From NCBI RefSeq assembly GCF_000142905.1, contig NW_013657668.1, forward strand, positions 172,492 through 236,491: a stretch of 64,000 nt of DNA. The letters run 5' to 3'. Source of the DNA: Thecamonas trahens ATCC 50062. Its lineage: Eukaryota > Protista > Apusomonadida. Positions within the stretch are counted from its first letter, which is position 1. Every line of letters begins with the position of its first letter. The translations under genes and the position numbers were made by a program. Below the pieces are notes generated by a model. The model made no database searches. It was not told the origin of the DNA and was given only the letters and a program-made list of their open reading frames with translations. Of this stretch, positions 854-27,200 are shown piece after piece.

Positions 854-899
854 TCAGACAATGCCATCTCCCCACCATCAGACAATGCCATCTCCCCCC
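854..899. repeat. 24-bp-period direct duplication (TCAGACAATGCCATCTCCCC x2) in a C-rich divergent promoter region
   Basis: Copies start at 854 and 878. Confidence 0.85.
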
Positions 900-1073
900 T
901 TGTCACTCCCAAACCGTTCCAACTGAATTCCTTCGCCATTCCCATTCCCACTCCCATTCCCTGTTCCCGTCCCCTCACTCGTTCCCTCTCCCTCGCCCAA
1001 TTAGCATTGCCGTTACCACCCCTCGCCACCCCACCCCTCCCCACCCCCACCCCTCCCCACTCCCCCACTTCCC

Positions 1074-2516
1074 ATGGCAGAGTACTCAGACTCGCACTTT
1101 GCCTTGGGCGCACATGGAGGCGCCGAACTCGACCCGCGAATCCATGCCGCCGCCCCACACCAGGCCTACTCGTCCGGTGCACCGCCGCCGGCTGCCTCGC
1201 CGTCGCAGGCGAGCCACTCGTATTATGCTCCGGGCGCTGACGAGCCATATGCTGCATACCGCCCAAGGCCATCGCGGGGGCCGGCGCATGTTCCTGATGC
1301 CAATCAAGATCCCTACGCCAACGGCCATAGCCGCGGCCTGCGCATGCCGTACGGCCGCGGCGTCGACTCGTCCTCGGCCTCGGCCCAGCTCGCCTCCGGC
1401 ACCGATCCGCAGCACGAGTACGAGCACTACGCCAAGACCTCGGGCGCCGCCACCCGCCGCATCTTTGACCCGCGCTCGGATCGCGACCGCATGCGTGAGA
1501 TGCAGCGGTTCCAGGCCGCAACCTCGGTCAACAACAAGCGCTACAACCCGGTGCTCCAGCGGTACGCCGACGACAGCGAGGAGCGCGCCGCCCGTGACGC
1601 CGAGTCCCGCCGCCGCTCGGCCCAGCTCCAGCGCCACGCGCGCGCCCCGCAGGCCGAGCTCGGCTCGGTTCGCGACCTCCATGTCGGCAAGCTGAAGAAC
1701 CCGCCTCGCCGCCGCGGCGCAGGCGCCGTCGGCCCGCCGCCAGACTCGGACATCTTCAACCCGAATCCTCTCCCGTACCGCCCGGGCAAGCGCCACTCGG
1801 AAATCGACTACACCCGCGAGACCGAAGAGTGGTGGAACCTGAAGCGCGATCCGCCGCCGCCGCCGCCTCGCCGCCCGCCCAACCCGTACTCGCGCGAGGC
1901 CAAGGAGCTGCTCGAGAAGAACCAGGGGACAAACATGACCGACATTCTCCAGCCTGATCGCCACAAGACCAAGGCCAACATGCTCCGCTCGCCCTCGCCC
2001 ACCCACCACCGCGCCCCGCGCCGCTCACGTTCGCCAGGCTACTCGCTCGAGGGCGTCCACCCAGACCCAGCGAGCTCGTACACCTCGGACCTCCTCCGCC
2101 ACGAGGCCCACATTCCCTCTGCGCCCGAGGCCGCGCCTTCCGTCTCCAATCTCTCAAACATCGGCCTCGACCACACCTCGGAGCGCCGCCAACCGTCCAA
2201 GCGCGTCTTTGCCGACAACGTCCACCATCGTACCTCGTACAACATTGTCTCCGGCCACTCTTACGACGGCTCCGATGGCCGCCCCAGGCTCTCCCGTCGC
2301 CCGCTCAAGCCCGAGATGCAGGCCGGCAAGGGCGTCGCCAAGACCCTCGTCTACCGCGGGCCCGGCGATCCCGGATCCGACCCCGCCACAAACAACGGCG
2401 CCGGCTACTCGCTCACAGGCTCCAAGCGCCGCGGCTTTGCCCCGCACATCTACGGTGAGACCGGGGCCGACAACTGGAAAGAGACCAATCCCAAGTTTAC
2501 CTTTAAGCGTTATTAG
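1074..2516 (+). CDS. Hypothetical, largely disordered Pro/Arg/Ser-rich protein (480 aa)
   Basis: Long ORF with C-ending codon bias. ATG follows the C-rich leader seen before other + strand genes here. No recognised domain; short YNPVLQRY and YNIVSG motifs. Confidence 0.75.
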   Translation: MAEYSDSHFALGAHGGAELDPRIHAAAPHQAYSSGAPPPAASPSQASHSYYAPGADEPYAAYRPRPSRGPAHVPDANQDPYANGHSRGLRMPYGRGVDSSSASAQLASGTDPQHEYEHYAKTSGAATRRIFDPRSDRDRMREMQRFQAATSVNNKRYNPVLQRYADDSEERAARDAESRRRSAQLQRHARAPQAELGSVRDLHVGKLKNPPRRRGAGAVGPPPDSDIFNPNPLPYRPGKRHSEIDYTRETEEWWNLKRDPPPPPPRRPPNPYSREAKELLEKNQGTNMTDILQPDRHKTKANMLRSPSPTHHRAPRRSRSPGYSLEGVHPDPASSYTSDLLRHEAHIPSAPEAAPSVSNLSNIGLDHTSERRQPSKRVFADNVHHRTSYNIVSGHSYDGSDGRPRLSRRPLKPEMQAGKGVAKTLVYRGPGDPGSDPATNNGAGYSLTGSKRRGFAPHIYGETGADNWKETNPKFTFKRY

Positions 2517-2671
2517 TTCATCTACCATAACACCCTTGCTTGCCGAGCCCCATACCGCCGTCGCCGCGAATGCCCGTGCCGTTGTGGCCGTGACTGGCTT
2601 GTGTCGTCACCGCGTCGCCGTAGGTCACCGCGTCACTGCACTCCAGCCCACCCCCGCGCGCCCACGCACCC

Positions 2672-5440
2672 ATGCCGTCCCTCCACTCGCTCCTTGTCCT
2701 CCTCGCCATTATCGTCGTCTCTGCCTCTGCCGCCCGCCTCCGCCGCCGCTCCCGACCTCCGCCGCTGTGCCCGGGCGCCGCCGCGCCTCCCACACATTCC
2801 GCCCTGGTTGCTGCGGGCAACACCGCGTACGCCGAGGCCAGGTTCCCCGACGCAGTCGACTGCTACACAGCGGCAGAGGAGATTGTTGGGCGAGCAAAGA
2901 CGGAGTCGCCTGCGCTGGCGCCGGCTAATCGCGCGCTGGCACTCCTGGCCTGGGCTGATGCTTCGGCGGCAGCCGACGCCGCATCGCGCCGCAAAGAAGC
3001 AGCCCGGGCGGCAGCGGCTGCCGTCCGCGCCGATCCACGACTCTCGTTGGCGCATCTGGCCCGCGGCCTGGTATTCAAGGCTGCACGCAAGATCGATCGC
3101 GCTCTGGCTGCCTTTCGCAAGGCCGACGCCCTCGCTCCAGCTACCGATGCGTCGGCCGCCCTGCTTGCCGCCGGCCTGTTGTTTGAAGAGAGCGAGTTTG
3201 CCGCCGCTGCTGACGCCTACGGTGACATTGTTGACTCTGGTCGCACCGCTGACCCGAGGTATTTGTTCAACGCGGGGCTGGCGGCCGCGCGCGCAGGCGA
3301 TCATGCCCGCGCTGCTGCCTGGTTTACCCGCGCCGCCGACGATCCGAGCCTCACCGACGCCCGCCGCTACGCCGCATGGTCGCTGGCAGCACTCGGTCCC
3401 GAACGCGAGGAAGACGCTCGACTTGCTTTCACCGTTCTACTTGAGACCGGCGAGCCTGGCGCGTACGCCGATCTTGTCCGCTTCGAACGGACTCGCGGGC
3501 ACCTCGACGCTGCCGCTGAGGCACTCGACGCTTCCCGCCGCCACCTCGGATCCAGCGCCTACCGTTCTGCTCACGGCGGCATGCTCCAGGTCGCCGACGC
3601 CCGCCTTGCCCTAGATGCTGGAGAACTTGCGCGCGCCTCGCGGCTTCTCGACGCCGTCCTCGAGTCGACAGCAAAGCCGGATCCTGCCGCCTATACTGTC
3701 CTTGGCATGCTCCACCGCCGATTTGGTCGCCTTCCCGCGGCGCTGGCCGCCTTTGAGCGTGCTGCTGCTACCATCGCCACAGCTGGCAGTGGCGCTGACA
3801 CTTCGACCTCCTCTACCGCCGCTGTCGAGAATGCCTTCAACTGGGCGCTAGCCCTGTTTGAGTCCGGCGACCTTGACCACGCACTCAGACTCTACCGCGC
3901 CGGCTTGGCATCGATGCCCACCGCCGAAGTTTACCTTGCCCTGGCATCGGTCCACACCGCCCGCTCAGACCACACCGCTGCGCTAGAAGCCATCAATGCC
4001 GCACTGGACCTCGACCCTACCTCGGCGCATGCGCTCTCTGACCGTGCCTTTGCACGGCTGATGGTCCTCGACCTTGCTGCCCGTGACGAGGACAAGTCGG
4101 TTCTCGCCGCAGGCATCGCTGCCGACGTTGCTGCCAATGCTGGTGATCCAACTAAGCGTCCAGCTGCCCGCCCATTCCACGCTCTCGCCTTTGATCTCGA
4201 CCCAGCCATCTTCCGCGACCTGGCTGCTGCCTACGCCCGCTGGACCCTTGCCTCGCTTGCTGCTCTCGAGCTGGAGCCGTACACATGGGAACTCGAGCCG
4301 GGCCAGAGCCGACCGCGGCGAAACCCAGGCCCGCTCCGTGTTGGCTACCTCTCTGCAGACTGGGGCAGCAGCCCGGTGGGGCGGCTGATGATCGACGTTC
4401 CGTCGCTTCACAAGCCCAGCGTGGTCAACGCCTCGCTTCTTGCCCTCCGCCCCTCGGACGGCTCTCCCGGGCGCACCGCCACCGAGGCTCTCTACGGCCA
4501 CGCTTTTCATCGCGTGTGGGACATGGACCATGCCTCGCTGGCGGCCTTTATCCACGACGATCTCCGGCTCGACGTCCTTATTGATCTCACCGGCCACACC
4601 GCCGGCAACCGCCACGAGCTCCTTGCGCTTGCGCCTGCTCCGGTCATTGTCAACATGCTCGGCTATCCAGGCACCATGGGCGCGAGCTACGTCACACACA
4701 TGGTCGCCGATGCCATCACTGCCCCTGATCCAACGCTCTTTGCCGAGCAGTTACTCCTGCTCCCGCACACCTACCAACCCAACTCGTTTGCACGACGGCT
4801 GCCACGGAGCGAGCTTGCTGCCCGCGCAGGCTCCCGTGCCGATCACAACCTCCCGGAGACCGCCACCGTTCTCGTCTGCTTCAACGCTCTCTACAAGATC
4901 GACACCCAGGCTCTCGACGTCTGGGCTCGGCTCCTCCTCGCCCAGCCCGACGCTGTCCTCTGGCTCATGTCGTCGTCGTCGCACGCCGAGGCCGCAATCG
5001 TCGACGCTCTGTCCGCGCGTGGCGTGAACACAAGCAGCTCGCTTGTCTTTGCGCCGCACTTGCCGCACACAGCGCATGTGGCCCGCCTCACCCACGCCGA
5101 CCTCTTTCTCGATACCCACGTGTACAATGCACACACCACAGCGCTCGATGCGCTCTGGGCCGGTGTCCCGGTCATCACCTACCCAGGCGATGCCTTCCAA
5201 TCGCGGGTTGGTGCCTCGCTTGTCTCCGCCGCATTCGCCGGTGAGCCGACCGCCCTCGGTGCTCTGGTGGTTGACTCGTGGTCGGCCTACGAGTCTGCCG
5301 CCCGGGCCCTTCTTAGCGGTGGCCTCGCTACGGTCAAGAACTCGCTCGCAGTGCGCCTCGCCAGAGGCACCTCGCCGCTATTCGACACCGCAAACTACGT
5401 CGCCGCGCTCGAGGACTTGCTCGTCGCCCTCTTCGACTAG
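2672..5440 (+). CDS. TPR-containing GT41 glycosyltransferase (OGT/SPINDLY-like) with N-terminal signal-peptide-like segment (922 aa)
   Basis: TPR repeats, then LRVGYLSADWGSSPVGRLM, DLTGHTAGNR, NMLGYPGTMG, FNALYKID and DLFLDTHVYNAHTTALDALWAGVP, which are GT41 catalytic motifs. Confidence 0.9.
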   Translation: MPSLHSLLVLLAIIVVSASAARLRRRSRPPPLCPGAAAPPTHSALVAAGNTAYAEARFPDAVDCYTAAEEIVGRAKTESPALAPANRALALLAWADASAAADAASRRKEAARAAAAAVRADPRLSLAHLARGLVFKAARKIDRALAAFRKADALAPATDASAALLAAGLLFEESEFAAAADAYGDIVDSGRTADPRYLFNAGLAAARAGDHARAAAWFTRAADDPSLTDARRYAAWSLAALGPEREEDARLAFTVLLETGEPGAYADLVRFERTRGHLDAAAEALDASRRHLGSSAYRSAHGGMLQVADARLALDAGELARASRLLDAVLESTAKPDPAAYTVLGMLHRRFGRLPAALAAFERAAATIATAGSGADTSTSSTAAVENAFNWALALFESGDLDHALRLYRAGLASMPTAEVYLALASVHTARSDHTAALEAINAALDLDPTSAHALSDRAFARLMVLDLAARDEDKSVLAAGIAADVAANAGDPTKRPAARPFHALAFDLDPAIFRDLAAAYARWTLASLAALELEPYTWELEPGQSRPRRNPGPLRVGYLSADWGSSPVGRLMIDVPSLHKPSVVNASLLALRPSDGSPGRTATEALYGHAFHRVWDMDHASLAAFIHDDLRLDVLIDLTGHTAGNRHELLALAPAPVIVNMLGYPGTMGASYVTHMVADAITAPDPTLFAEQLLLLPHTYQPNSFARRLPRSELAARAGSRADHNLPETATVLVCFNALYKIDTQALDVWARLLLAQPDAVLWLMSSSSHAEAAIVDALSARGVNTSSSLVFAPHLPHTAHVARLTHADLFLDTHVYNAHTTALDALWAGVPVITYPGDAFQSRVGASLVSAAFAGEPTALGALVVDSWSAYESAARALLSGGLATVKNSLAVRLARGTSPLFDTANYVAALEDLLVALFD

Positions 5441-14604: not shown

Positions 14605-14969
14605 NNNNNNNNNNNNNNNNNNNNNNNNNNNNNNNNNNNNNNNNNNNNNNNNNNNNNNNNNNNNNNNNNNNNNNNNNNNNNNNNNNNNNNNNNNNNNNNN
14701 NNNNNNNNNNNNNNNNNNNNNNNNNNNNNNNNNNNNNNNNNNNNNNNNNNNNNNNNNNNNNNNNNNNNNNNNNNNNNNNNNNNNNNNNNNNNNNNNNNNN
14801 NNNNNNNNNNNNNNNNNNNNNNNNNNNNNNNNNNNNNNNNNNNNNNNNNNNNNNNNNNNNNNNNNNNNNNNNNNNNNNNNNNNNNNNNNNNNNNNNNNNN
14901 NNNNNNNNNNNNNNNNNNNNNNNNNNNNNNNNNNNNNNNNNNNNNNNNNNNNNNNNNNNNNNNNNNNNN
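14605..14969. other. Assembly gap flanked by poly-G
   Basis: Run of N. Confidence 1.
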
Positions 14970-17973: not shown

Positions 17974-18420
17974 NNNNNNNNNNNNNNNNNNNNNNNNNNN
18001 NNNNNNNNNNNNNNNNNNNNNNNNNNNNNNNNNNNNNNNNNNNNNNNNNNNNNNNNNNNNNNNNNNNNNNNNNNNNNNNNNNNNNNNNNNNNNNNNNNNN
18101 NNNNNNNNNNNNNNNNNNNNNNNNNNNNNNNNNNNNNNNNNNNNNNNNNNNNNNNNNNNNNNNNNNNNNNNNNNNNNNNNNNNNNNNNNNNNNNNNNNNN
18201 NNNNNNNNNNNNNNNNNNNNNNNNNNNNNNNNNNNNNNNNNNNNNNNNNNNNNNNNNNNNNNNNNNNNNNNNNNNNNNNNNNNNNNNNNNNNNNNNNNNN
18301 NNNNNNNNNNNNNNNNNNNNNNNNNNNNNNNNNNNNNNNNNNNNNNNNNNNNNNNNNNNNNNNNNNNNNNNNNNNNNNNNNNNNNNNNNNNNNNNNNNNN
18401 NNNNNNNNNNNNNNNNNNNN
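17974..18420. other. Assembly gap
   Basis: Run of N. Confidence 1.
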
Positions 18421-21465: not shown

Positions 21466-22470
21466 ATGTCCTCCCGCTTCCTCTCCTCCTACACAGAGGA
21501 CGTGGCCCTCCCCGCGAAGGACTTTGTCTACGAGCGGCCCAACACAAGCTACGAGTGGCGTCGCCACAAGGGCATCGATCTCACCGCAGACATCTCCGGT
21601 GACCACCACTCCCACCCGCCGCCGACATCGGCCTCTGCATCTGCCTCTGCGGCCTCGCCCGCGCCGCCTACATCTGGCGAACCCTTGCCCCAGCCCGGCC
21701 ACATCGCCGCTGGCGCTACGTCTGCATCTGATGCTCCTACTGCTCACACCGATCACGCCCTCGATACCACCCAAGACTCGCTGCGTGTATATGATCCGAA
21801 CCGGGCAGTCTCGATCTACTCGTCAGACTTTGAGTCGGCCCTTGTGGCCGCTGCCGGCGAGCGGGAAGAGACCGCCCGCCGGCTCGCCGCCGGGCCTGAC
21901 GCCGTCGATCCGACCCACGCCCCGCCGCCGGTCCTTGCCAAACGAAACAAGGTTGAGCAGACTCGCCCGCCGCGCGAGCATGAGGTTCTTTGCCCGCTTC
22001 CGGTGCGCTCCATGTGCCATCGCGAATACGGCGAATACGGCTACAATCCCGTCGAGGCCAACCCGCGCCATCCCAAGGAGATCTCGCTTCGCTCCTCCAA
22101 CGCCGACCTCGCCGCAGGCTCCACAAAAACAACCAACCACCTTCCGGGCTACACGGGCTTCCTCCCGGCCGATCCGCACAACGTCCACGCTCGCCGCCAG
22201 GCTGTCGCTAACTGTCCGCGCAGGACCGAAAAGGCCTCGTCCACCCTCAACGTTGGCCGCGAGATGGTGCCCGGTTACGCTGGCTACAGGCCGTCATCTC
22301 CCTCTTTCAACGCCAACCGCTCCTTCCGTATGTATCGCCAGTCCGAATACGCAGATGCTTTTTACCGCAAGCCGGTCACCGCTGATGACGTGGTCGAGCA
22401 GCGCAAGCAGCGTGAGCTCTTCTCTCGCGTTCTCAATCCGTGGAACCACGCCTCATTCAACATCAGCTAG
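21466..22470 (+). CDS. FAM166-like (PGYxGxxP repeat) putative ciliary microtubule inner protein
   Basis: ATG 21466 after a C-rich leader; HLPGYTGFLP and MVPGYAGYRP repeats in an otherwise low-complexity protein. Confidence 0.65.
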   Translation: MSSRFLSSYTEDVALPAKDFVYERPNTSYEWRRHKGIDLTADISGDHHSHPPPTSASASASAASPAPPTSGEPLPQPGHIAAGATSASDAPTAHTDHALDTTQDSLRVYDPNRAVSIYSSDFESALVAAAGEREETARRLAAGPDAVDPTHAPPPVLAKRNKVEQTRPPREHEVLCPLPVRSMCHREYGEYGYNPVEANPRHPKEISLRSSNADLAAGSTKTTNHLPGYTGFLPADPHNVHARRQAVANCPRRTEKASSTLNVGREMVPGYAGYRPSSPSFNANRSFRMYRQSEYADAFYRKPVTADDVVEQRKQRELFSRVLNPWNHASFNIS

Positions 22471-22649
22471 TACTCCACGCTTTCGCCGCCTGCATCTCGC
22501 CACACTGCACCTCTCATTACTGCGATAAACAAGCTCATCTTCCCAGCAGCTAGTCTCCTCCTATTTCTCCACGTTGAATGAAAATGCATGATCGTGCGTT
22601 TTTTGGATCTCTCAAAGACGAAACGATGGCCATTTCCGCACCACCAGCC

Positions 22650-23635
22650 TCCAGGACTCCTCTCTCCGGAATTTCCCCTCCCGCTCGCAGGCTCGCGGTC
22701 GGGAGTCCCGGTGACAAACAGGGCTGTGGTGTGGATGACACAGTGCACACCCTGGGAGACCCCCTACATGAGGGGGCCGTACTGTCCTTGGACAGTGCGG
22801 GAGTCGTGGACAATGTAATTTTTGGGGTCGCGCGACCTTCGGCTTCATCCGCGCTCAGGGCACCGGATGAAGGGTAGCAACCAGTCACGGGCTCTGCCCG
22901 TGGCCGGGGGTGCACCCGGTGTCTTGAGCAGGCCGAGGAGCGTGTACCACCAGGAAGGGGGGCCAGGGGAGGAGCCGGCCCCCTGGGCGCCAGGACGCAG
23001 TCCGTCTGGCGCCCTTGCACATCCTTCCTCGTGGTCAGAAATGACCCGCCAAACGTCATGCGACCGGAGTCCGCAAGGGGGTGCGGTCTCATTCGAAGGG
23101 GGTTGACCGGCGGTAGGTGCACCTACCGTTTGTCGCCCCCGTTGGTTGCGGTCAGGGATCCGTCCCTAAACGGCGCTGCGAGGTGTGGACGGATCAGCGG
23201 GGCGAGGGCGCATGCGCCCTGCTCACGCTGATCCTCCTAACCCCCCATGGGATGTGTGTCCATCCCGCCGTCGGTCCGCCGACGGCAACCAGTGTCGTCA
23301 CATGTTGTCGGCATTATCATCCATATTGCCAACCTCTCCCTGGTGGACCGCCGGATGCTCGGTGGTCCTGAGCTGCAACCAGGACAGAGGTCGACCTCTT
23401 GGAGGGTGGGATCTGAAGGAATATCGGTCGTCGGCGCCCCAGTGAGGGATTCCAAGTGACTAGAGTATCCTGCAGTCGATGTTGAGCACCCAACAAGTTG
23501 TACGCCGCACCACTTACGGATGTCCTATGTGGCGGCCGTCTTCTCGCCGTAGTGAGATCAGTGGTTCGCGGTACTTAGGGCCGGCGTACAATCCCACGGC
23601 AGGTGGCACCCTGCGGTTCCTGTAGGTGCTTCTCT
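22650..23635 (+). ncRNA. Candidate long structured non-coding RNA, family unassigned
   Basis: More than 15 helices, including nested multiloops; G-U wobbles consistently on the + strand; Sm-type site AATTTTTGG at 22817-22825; no credible ORF; unusually large gap between convergent genes. Confidence 0.5.
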
Positions 23636-23717
23636 GCTTAACTCCATGCAACAACTCTCCAGCACGTGATCTGGAACACAGGAGCTCTCAACAGCGCTGC
23701 TGTGTCTCGTCCATTGT

Positions 23718-23754
23718 CAACGCCATCTTCAACGCCATCTCCAACGCCCATCTC
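23718..23754. repeat. CAACGCCATCT x3 short tandem repeat, followed by a pyrimidine tract to ~23820
   Basis: Directly visible; the third copy is imperfect. Confidence 0.8.
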
Positions 23755-23824
23755 TTAACCCCCCCAACACGCCAGTTTACCCCCTTTTTTCGCCCCCTTC
23801 CCCCCTTTCCCCTCTCTTTCTGGA

Positions 23825-24120
23825 CAAGACCTCCTCCTGCACCCAAGATCCGATGCAACCTTATCGGGTCGGAGACCCCCTACCGTAAGGTTGGATAACT
23901 AACCCCTGCACCCGTGCAGGGCGGCATAATTGTTCTAATCGGCCCGGCTCACGCCGGTCCGATCCACGTCCTGACCCCTACCCAAGGCCAGGCCCCAAGT
24001 CCAAGCGCTTCATGCGTATGACGAGGCTCACGAGTAAGTTGGCGCCAGACGGGCCCGGACAGTCCCTTCCTACGGTCGGGGGCTTCGTCCGACGTTCGGT
24101 TGGTTGTGGACCCTCTAGTC
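23825..24120 (+). ncRNA. Second structured block (~300 nt): a separate small RNA or the 3' domain of the upstream RNA
   Basis: Helices CAACCTTA/TAAGGTTG (23856-23893), CCCTGCAC/GTGCAGGG (23904-23921), ATCGGCCCGGC/GCCGGTCCGAT (23938-23963) and GTCGG/CCGAC (~24075-24093). Confidence 0.35.
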
Positions 24121-24235
24121 TACATCATTAAACTGATTCTCACACACACACCACCAGCCTCCACACCCTTCAAGCTCAAAATCGCTTGCTTTCATGGGAA
24201 AATCGCAAGCATACGCTTGGCTATCAACGTCATGG

Positions 24236-27200
24236 CTACAGCTCCTTCTCCACAATTGCTCCCGCCGGCATTGCAAACGAGTCCGACGAGTCCGTCGAGC
24301 TCGACGACGACGAGTCGTCCTCCGAGTTGAGGTGCGCCGTCCGCTGCACGGTTGCCTGTTTCTCAACGCCTGCGAGATCCGCACGCCCGTAGAGCATCGC
24401 GAGCATTCGCGCCATCTGCTCCCGCATCACTCGCGTCGGCTCGTCGTCGCACAGCTCTGCGTCCGTCAGCCGCGCCACAACCTTGGGCAGCAGCCGCTCG
24501 ATGTGCTGGTACAGCGTGCAAATCGCCGCGTCGCGGTACTTCTCCGGAACCTCCGAGAACGTCACCGCCACGCCCTCCACGCGCTCCGGCACCGTCGAGA
24601 GCTTGTCGAACAGCTCCGCCATCACGCGTTCGTTCGACACGATAAAGTCGTTGAACTGAAGCATTTTCTTCTCCTTGTTGCCAAACTCCTTCTTGTTCGA
24701 CAGGTTCTGCAGCACCTTGCCGATCAGCACAAGCAGCTTCCGCTCCGTCGGCGTCGGCAGCTCCTTCACCAGCCCGTACGACTCGGGCGCCGTGATGCAC
24801 GGCACCATGAAACGGAGGAAGAAGAACCCACCAACCGCAATCGAGTTCTGCTGCTGCGTGTGCTCCTCAAGCAGCCGCCGCGCAGCCTGCGACGTCGGGT
24901 CCAGCGCTCCCTGCAGGTTGTCACACGCGTCCACCATCTGGTCGAGCTTGTCCGTCAGCTCCAGGATTGCGTCGTTGAACATGTCGAGCCCCTCCCGCAT
25001 CGGGTTGATCGCCACTCCGATCGACGCCAGGTCGGACGTCAGCAGCGGCTCCAGGTTCTCGATCTCGTGGAAGACCTCGGACCCGTTGACGTACGCAGAC
25101 TTGGTCTCCTTCAGATTGTCGTGCAGGTTCTCCGCCACAATAGCCGCGAGGTTCTCCGTCGACACCGGGAACCGCTCAGACATGCACGCCTGCACATGAG
25201 CAAACAGCTCGCGGAACGCCACAGGCAGGTACCGCTCAGACTCCACAATCGTGTTGAACATCCGCTGGCACTTGTTAAGCAGCCCGAACTTGTTCGTCTC
25301 GTCCTGCGCCTCGCCCTTGGCCTTCTTCTGCTCCTCGAGCTCCAGATCGTGGATGATCTTGTTCAGCGGTCGCCCAATCGTCGCGTGCACGTAGTCCAGG
25401 CCCTGCATCTTCGAGTACGTCTTGAACATTTTGGTCGCAAACGAGTTGGTCCGGAACATCGTCGCCTGCGACTGCGCTCCAAACACCTCCCGCGTGATAA
25501 AGTCCTTCTGCAGGTCCACAGACAGCTTGTGCGCCTCGGTGAGAATGAGCACAGCCTTGGCCACGTTGTCCGCCTCCGTCGCCTGCGTCACGTCCACCAC
25601 GGCGTGAAGCACCTCGTAGCCCGGCAGCAGCAGCATCTCCAGCAGCGGGCCCGACTTGGCAATGATAGCGTCGAAATCGAGCGGCTTCTTCGATCCAAAC
25701 GAGCCAAACACCACAGAATGCCGCAGATCGTCCGTCAGCTCCGGTGGCCCGTACAGCTCCTCCTCGCGTTTCCGCTTGTACACAAGGATCCCGAGGAGCA
25801 CAATCAGCAGGCAGCAAACAGCTCCCGCAACCGCAATGCCGACAATCGAGCTCGTGCCCAGCGGCGGCTCCGGCGGCTTGGGTACCGCCGCAGGCTGCTC
25901 AAACACAAAGAACAGCGTCGTCTCGTCAAACCGGCCCCACGGCGCCACCACCGTAAACTGCGCGCCACCGGCCCCGCGCTGCGGTGTCGAACACTGCAGC
26001 TCGCTCTCGGACACATACACCGTCTCGTTGACCGGCACTCCGTCAAACGCACACAGCAGCCGCGAGTAGTTGGTGAACAGCACGCCGGTCACCGTCACCG
26101 TCTCACCACCCGATGTAAGCCCGTTGAGCGGCGCAATCGCGTCCACAGACGGGCAGCCCTGCCCGCCAAACAGCGGCGTCTCGGACGGCGCCGTCGCGTT
26201 CGGGTTCACGCACGACGACGCAATCGTGCACTGCTGCGTGTCCACGCACCACCCGCACTCGGGCCGCGCTGCCTCCCAGCACTCGGAGCACGTGTCCCGG
26301 AGCAGGCACGAGTAGTACTCGAACGGCACAGGTGCAAGATAGTCCTCGTCGATATACCGCAGCGTGAGCGTTCCAGTTGTCGCCACCAGCGACGTCGGCG
26401 ACACGCACGTAGCTGACGATTCGGTCGCTCGGCCACACGTGCCGCAAGCTCCACAATGTCCTGCCCGGCACCACGGTCCCACTGACACGTCGTGCCAGGC
26501 AGGAACGGGCCGCCCGAAAACACAACCTCGGTCCCGCCCTGCATCGAGCCCGACGACGCAGACGGCGTGCCCGTCGGACACGCCCGGTTCTCGCCGCTCA
26601 GCCCGGGAATCACCGTCGTCGTGTTGGCACACGCCCCGCCGCCGATCCCCACACGCGACACACAGCTTGACTCCTCGAGGCACCACGAGCAGATCGACGC
26701 ACACGCGCCGCACGATGTCTGCGCGGCACACACAATCACCTGCACACGCGTCTCGGCAAGGCTCTGCATCACGTAGTTGTCGCCACTGTCCACAGACAGA
26801 CACACCACGTACTCGCCAGCGTTAGCAAACGTCACGTTAAAATACGCGAGTCCGCCAGGCCCAGCCTCATTGTAGTCGCGCGCGTACAGCACGTTGCTCG
26901 GCACCTGGCACCCGCCCGACACGCGGTCAAACCCGATCTTGGTGTTGACCGACGCCGTCGCACCAGCGAGAACAATCTCCGTCTGCACTCCGGCCTCGAG
27001 CACGTTCCAGCCTCTTCGCCCCCGTCAATGCTCAGCGACGTAATCGTTGTCGGCTGCGCAGAGAGCGCCGTCACATTGAGCCCAGCCTGCTTGACGTAGC
27101 TCAGCCCGCCATCCACAGACAAGCAAACCTCGTACGGCCCCGATGGCGAGTTAAACGGCCCCAGGTTGAACGTTGTCGCCCCAGATCCGAGCGAGACAGC

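Follow-up and report, generated by a model that had tools for sequence, protein, structure and literature searches.

The interval 22654-24149 of the DNA examined here is very probably an insertion of a low-copy, recently active, non-coding and non-autonomous retroposon of the non-LTR type. The window, i.e. the whole stretch of 64,000 nucleotides that was analysed, corresponds to positions 172492-236491 of scaffold C12 (contig NW_013657668.1) in the gapped draft assembly of Thecamonas trahens ATCC 50062, which comprises 28.7 Mb in 131 scaffolds. This assembly is gene-dense, with long ORFs, a G+C content of roughly 60-65% and scaffolding gaps, two of which (runs of N at 14605-14969 and 17974-18420) are situated inside the window. 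The initial annotation had described a stretch of about 1 kb as either a long structured ncRNA or an insertion derived from a structured RNA. The insertion is retained here while the ncRNA gene is not, because the sequence occurs in dispersed copies, some of them truncated or degenerate, with target site duplications (TSDs) of their own. The retroposon family is new and ordinary in kind, and its behaviour is closest to that of SVA-like composites and of stringent-type SINE/LINE systems. A false lead is thereby removed: what lies at this locus, in a compact protist genome, is not a structured RNA gene of kilobase scale.

Genomic setting and organization of the element

The gap that holds the element is bounded by a + strand ORF ending at 22470 and by a - strand gene, encoding a PSI-TIG-RasGAP protein, which ends at 24236. 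Without the insertion only ~255 bp would separate these two convergent genes, and the inserted retroposon is the reason why this gap is ~1.5 kb longer than neighboring convergent gaps. The earlier statement that the gap holds no credible ORF was confirmed: Pfam searches with ten ORF pieces gave nothing significant, the sole match having an E value of 0.19, which is chance level. The largest + strand ORF of the element is at most 94 aa long, and no ORF piece of the element matches Pfam.

The ~1-kb stretch first delimited is not a unit in itself. It forms the 5' two-thirds of a repeat at 22654-24149 bounded by 15-nt direct repeats, namely two identical copies of CACCACCAGCCTCCA at 22639-22653 (5' TSD) and 24149-24163 (3' TSD). 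The whole copy, ~1,495 bp on the + strand, is defined by full-length identity to other copies, with similarity stopping exactly at its ends; base 22654 is an extra 5' G of the window copy, and its last CA could belong either to the tail or to the TSD. The first part of the element is a hairpin-dense head module of 600 nt (22655-23255, + strand), and copy alignments show that it is followed by a body and 3' module (23256-24149, + strand) common to all older and truncated copies. The element ends in a (CA)n tail (24141-24149, + strand) whose length varies among copies. A terminal hairpin, GUGGAC...GUCUAC (24106-24123, + strand), lies 17 nt 5' of the tail and is conserved among the 10 compared copies, which are 76-100% identical; its six pairs are kept in 9/10, 9/10, 10/10, 10/10, 10/10 and 9/10 of them. 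This hairpin is the best candidate for a site recognized by a reverse transcriptase (RT). A repeat search of 22600-24200 returned only the TSD and internal hairpins; neither terminal inverted repeats nor long direct ones were found.

The 3' part of the RasGAP/PSI/TIG gene, together with 81 bp downstream of it (24155-25549 of the window), is duplicated on scaffold C35 at 98.7% identity (L037:109-1503, equal to C35:269109-270503). The end of that duplication falls within the TSD of the retroposon, at most 6 bp from the point of insertion, and on the upstream side the flanks are unrelated. This may be a coincidence or may mark a break-prone site.

Copies in the genome and marks of target-primed reverse transcription

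We searched the organism's own 28.7-Mb genome for copies with the gap as query. Four full copies were found, on C12 (the window), C16, C29 and C4, spanning 1,491-1,499 bp at 98.8-99.6% identity. Pairwise identity of the young copies is 98.3-99.6%, and the window copy is 98.6-99.5% identical over its full length to those on C16, C29 and C4. Two further copies (C10 and C41) are interrupted by a scaffold gap, one on C53 is 5'-truncated, and more than a dozen shorter or older matches show 75-92% identity. Full and partial copies are spread over seven scaffolds, with unlike flanks. The last 210 bp are common to 18 places in the genome and the 5' end is present in only 5-6. The head is confined to the young lineage, plus one older copy (L016) in which it is present from about element position 453, and the genome contains no match to the head other than tailed copies of the element. 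Dispersed degenerate copies had been named in the initial annotation as one of the observations that would speak against an RNA gene, and many dispersed copies are what this search returned.

Each of nine checked copies carries its own TSD of 10-15 bp, among them the window copy, L002, L004, L006, L028 (where it is of low complexity), L029, L030 and L033; the TSDs of copies other than the window copy include CCATGCAGTCTTT, TCTAAACTAGTAG, GCGAGCTTCACCT, CATGGTCTTGAT, CGCGGATCTGACT, TGTATGAACT and others. One full copy, L003, has no clear TSD. These lengths are inside the range of roughly 7-20 bp for target-primed insertions. A (CA)n tail of about 3 to 8 CA units is present at every complete 3' end. 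The 5' ends of copies lie within 1-3 nt of each other, some with an extra G or AG, while the 5'-truncated copies begin at element positions 243, 1281, 1301, 1331, 1339 (three independent insertions) and 1451, and all reach the common 3' end at ~1493-1495. TSDs, a variable short-repeat tail, 5' truncation and the lack of long terminal or inverted repeats are together the marks of a non-LTR-type insertion. The combination of per-copy TSDs, variable (CA)n tails and almost coincident 5' starts indicates target-primed reverse transcription.

A repeat that spreads at the DNA level, i.e. a DNA transposon or MITE, a solo LTR or a segmental duplication, could be proposed on the grounds that this genome contains probably active hAT elements as well as Ty3/gypsy elements and that the region is rich in palindromes on both strands. 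We consider it extremely unlikely. The element has neither terminal inverted repeats nor LTR-type ends, and its TSDs vary between 10 and 15 bp, compared with 8 bp for hAT in this genome. LTR elements typically give duplications of 4-6 bp. A variable simple-repeat tail, a common 3' end, ragged 5' ends, transduced upstream host sequence and flanks that differ from copy to copy also argue against such a repeat.

For the retroposon we propose that the + strand of the element would be transcribed, and that an RT supplied in trans would recognize the conserved 3' module (about 160 nt, comprising the terminal hairpin and the (CA)n tail). This enzyme would then prime cDNA synthesis on the nicked target and copy towards the 5' end, often incompletely. 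The tail, the truncated 5' ends and the transduction of upstream sequence described below make transcription of the + strand probable.

Some copies have features of their own. The truncated copy on C53 (L006, C53:16684-18152) contains an internal tandem duplication of 185 bp, so that element positions 888-1072 are present twice; C53 is a repeat-rich scaffold, interrupted by large gaps, on which two Ty3/gypsy elements and a 135-bp tandem array are also found. L028, L029 and L030 (C54:16387, C17:421813 and C46:176568), three old copies whose TSDs are separate, start at the same position, 1339 (CCCCAAGTCC), which points either to a hotspot of RT stops or to a short sub-family of ~157 bp. A scan of viral contigs for the 3' motif of the element gave no match.

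Folding of the element and the question of strand

The helices listed in the initial annotation are present in the sequence, most of them in the minimum free energy fold, and folding beyond chance was likewise borne out: 22655-23635 (981 nt) has a z score of -5.09 against dinucleotide shuffles, while two 981-nt coding controls nearby have +1.52 and -0.61. The - strand of the same interval folds equally well or better (z -5.53). The excess of structure is concentrated in the head (22655-23255; z -6.10 for the + strand, -8.14 for the - strand), and little of it is seen in 23256-23635 (z -2.3) or 23636-24149 (z -1.7).

Selection on a + strand RNA had been proposed from the frequency of G-U pairs, an argument which composition and strand controls remove. 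There are 24 G-U pairs on the + strand and 11 on the - strand in the G-rich head, and the relation is reversed in the C-rich 3' part, with 28 and 40. An excess that is limited to the G-rich head and reversed towards the 3' end follows base composition. To make the stems strand-neutral the element was also folded without G-U pairs and diverged copies were then compared. Changes in stems of these copies are of the G-U type and of the A-C type in the ratio 32:18, and in unpaired columns C/T and G/A differences stand in the same relation (111:62). Substitution amounts to 17.8% in paired and 22.4% in unpaired columns. In consensus folds of the copies most hairpins are kept, with double changes in 6/132 and 3/35 predicted pairs; covariation contributes little (terms of 8.56 and 0.22 kcal/mol), and in old copies pairing is lost at many stem positions. 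The richness in hairpins is real and local, and these comparisons gave no sign of strand-specific selection on the structure.

These results bear directly on whether the locus is a functional structured ncRNA gene, or a member of a family of such genes, on the + strand. Folding far above that of shuffles and of neighboring genes is what such a gene would show, as is the retention of most hairpins in diverged copies with a few pairs changed on both sides. We nevertheless judge this hardly credible, because the sequence is multi-copy with per-copy TSDs, tails and truncations, it matches no Rfam family, its structural signal is symmetric between the strands, its covariation terms are small, its stems are often broken in old copies, and its G-U bias equals the background mutation bias.

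Origin of the head

No match at gathering score was found when the 64-kb window was compared with Rfam. At E ≤ 10 the region 22400-24300 gave chance-level matches only (Sphinx_2, miRNA precursors and lncRNA fragments), none of them to an snRNA or telomerase RNA family, and an ARAGORN scan gave no tRNA or tmRNA. Two motifs read from the sequence of the head are reminiscent of cellular RNAs. One, at 22817-22837 (+ strand), is an Sm-site-like AATTTTTGG followed by a hairpin, GGTCGCGCGACC, and is of unproven origin. The other, at 23191-23243 (+ strand), is a strong 22-bp-arm hairpin formed by an inverted repeat (23191-23234) and followed by CCTAACCC (23236-23243). This 8-nt sequence is complementary to TTAGGG, which is the telomere repeat of this organism, with arrays at scaffold ends on C1 and C2, and it occurs once in the 64-kb window. 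An older copy has the 9-nt CCTAACCCT at the same place, and old copies beginning at about element position 602 lack the motif. The match to the telomere is 8 nt long (9 nt in one old copy), compared with ~1.5 repeats for a telomerase template, and the copies are tailed insertions.

It could be asked whether the copies are processed pseudogenes of a long structured RNA gene of the host, for example of the Sm class or of telomerase type, with the head keeping the fold of that RNA. The exceptional structure of the head (z -6.1), the Sm-like AAUUUUUGG with its following hairpin, the strong hairpin immediately 5' of CCUAACCC in an organism with TTAGGG telomeres, and the presence of CCTAACCCT at the corresponding place in an older copy are all in accordance with such an origin. 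However, no source gene was found, matches to the head in this genome all being tailed element copies, and no snRNA or telomerase RNA family appears even at an E value of 10. The - strand of the head folds even better than the + strand, and the 8-mer, having been chosen after the fact, is weak evidence. Long-lasting offspring in identity classes from 75 to 99%, some of them headless, are the behaviour of a family. We therefore regard the pseudogene origin as very unlikely.

At this locus the head does not represent a host RNA gene. Most likely it is a 5' module of the retroposon, captured or evolved, that would give the RNA stability, allow particle formation or act as a promoter. Capture from a cellular RNA is possible, though unsupported. 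A more specific proposal, to which we assign very little probability, is that the head is a captured cellular structured RNA with an Sm-site module and a boundary-like hairpin next to CCUAACCC, possibly related to the telomerase RNA or to an snRNA of this lineage, and that its copying took place very recently, in a genome with no detectable RTs other than Ty3/gypsy pol and telomerase. If this were true, the recent copying of a captured cellular-RNA head would imply an unconventional or unrecognized source of enzyme.

Reverse transcriptases and other mobile elements

In search of a partner for the element, the whole assembly was compared in six frames with the RVT_1, Exo_endo_phos_2 and Exo_endo_phos models. 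RVT_1 matched at seven places, which represent Ty3/gypsy pol (about four families) and telomerase; a weak match on C84 is 99% identical to a gypsy copy. The LINE-type endonuclease model, Exo_endo_phos_2, had no match in the whole assembly, and none of the 33 Exo_endo_phos matches lies beside an RT match. No LINE-type RT was found in the gapped assembly, and neither was a resident LINE with the same 3' end; given the gaps, in which a LINE may lie undetected, this absence is not proven. The RT loci have no DNA in common with the element, and no longer shared element was found upstream of seven short 3' fragments. The lack of a visible partner could be attributed to its situation in unassembled sequence, to its loss, or to its being of a kind missed by the models. 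Which RT mobilizes the element, when no LINE is visible in the assembly, is the question of wider interest raised by this family.

The RT loci themselves (L021-L027) are at C33:208857, C25:3798, C20:8442, C53:34458, C53:40458 and C84:10592, with L025 at C10:261781. The roughly four Ty3/gypsy families have intact pol ORFs of 1,125-1,534 aa, and the telomerase reverse transcriptase on C10 possesses TEN, RBD, RT and C-terminal domains. The genome also holds a hAT DNA transposon of 2.75 kb, with an 846-aa ORF (zf-BED, DUF659 and hAT dimerisation domains), terminal inverted repeats CAGTGAACGGAACG and an 8-bp duplication. It is probably active, with at least five copies at 99-100% identity; copies are located at C9:402770-405562, C4:516460-519205, C4:227969-230715, C15:32021-34764 and C26:23060-25749, and another at L038:225-2968, on the metagenome contig Ga0208059_1000794 discussed below. 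On that contig the 846-aa ORF adjoins the retroposon; it is a hAT transposase, unrelated to the element. With hAT present and no L1, the transposon content here is unlike that of Capsaspora as described in PMC4007536.

Comparison with known retroposons

The element encodes no RT, which separates it from autonomous LINEs. It also differs from classical SINEs, having no match to a tRNA, 7SL, 5S or snRNA head and a length of 1,491-1,499 bp against about 80-700 bp. The hominid SVA elements, mobilized by L1, resemble it in being kilobase-sized, non-coding and modular, with varied 5' modules and a common 3' part, in TSDs of 10-16 bp, in frequent truncation of the 5' end, in 5' transduction of host sequence lying upstream, and in a copy number that is low to moderate and includes very young copies. 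The two are unrelated in sequence; the tail here is (CA)n and not poly(A), no VNTR, Alu-like or SINE-R part is present, and a mobilizing LINE is known for SVA while none was found for the element.

In stringent-type LINE/SINE pairs, such as eel UnaL2/UnaSINE1 and others of the CR1/L2 type, a 3' stem-loop precedes a variable short-repeat tail, and the RT recognizes the former and slips on the latter. The element likewise has a conserved 3' stem-loop just upstream of a variable short tandem-repeat tail. It differs from these pairs in that no LINE with the same 3' end was found, and we only infer that the hairpin at 24106-24123 is recognized. RIME/ingi and NARTc/L1Tc of trypanosomatids are pairs in which a non-coding LINE derivative shares both ends with a known autonomous element. 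Like RIME and NARTc, the element is non-coding, resides in a compact protist genome, generates duplications longer than 10 bp and presumably depends on a LINE enzyme; unlike them, it has no detectable autonomous relative, and its head looks captured and does not resemble a LINE 5' UTR.

An snRNA-derived head on a LINE-dependent retroposon has been described in SINEU (Kojima 2015, PMC4494074). The idea is similar here, where an Sm-like site and a hairpin are found about 165-185 nt from the 5' end. In contrast to SINEU, U snRNA models gave no match to the head, the element has two to five times the length of a SINE, and it has no recognized polymerase III-type promoter or homology to a small RNA.

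5' transduction of host sequence and probable insertion polymorphism

On C16 an old 5'-truncated copy of the element is situated directly downstream of an ORF of 1,108 aa. Copies on C15 and C11 are collinear with this locus and carry the last 86 codons of the ORF and/or its 3' UTR; one of them starts within those 86 codons and the other 47 bp past the stop codon. A read-through transcript copied back with 5' truncation fits both copies, which in turn suggests that the + strand is transcribed. In the C15 copy, the stretch transduced from the host is unstructured (z -0.08). We considered whether the C15, C16 and C11 copies represent a second family with a 5' module of its own, and rejected this, as the module is the 3' end of the host-type ORF on C16.

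The 1,108-aa ORF is located at L019:3213-6539 (C16:169212-172538) and has two paralogues on C2 (C2:466301-469787 and C2:357509-361020), both of which end before the element. The three copies are 95-97% identical and have sharp common ends (query 872-4384), so that they may be either a gene family or an unrecognized mobile unit. The ORF on C16 has no RT or endonuclease domain and no confident match in Pfam or PDB, its matches to kinases being at chance level only.

One public metagenome contig, Ga0208059_1000794 (L038), bears a full copy of the element with 98.5% identity. Its 3' junction runs into DNA identical to C14:112114-112853, and at that point C14 runs straight on, with neither the element nor a gap. 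The contig is probably a chimera formed through repeats, since its hAT copy lacks the 8-bp duplication, and for this reason the single 3' junction alone was used. Judged by that junction, which is missing from the genome studied here, the contig probably records an insertion polymorphism. A young, low-copy family of non-coding retroposons with 5' transduction and polymorphism could serve as a strain marker and in the annotation and masking of its other copies. Stretches of the contig are 100% identical to C7:192007-192231 and C14:112111-112853, which indicates that the same species, with other sites of transposon insertion, is present in a public environmental sample.
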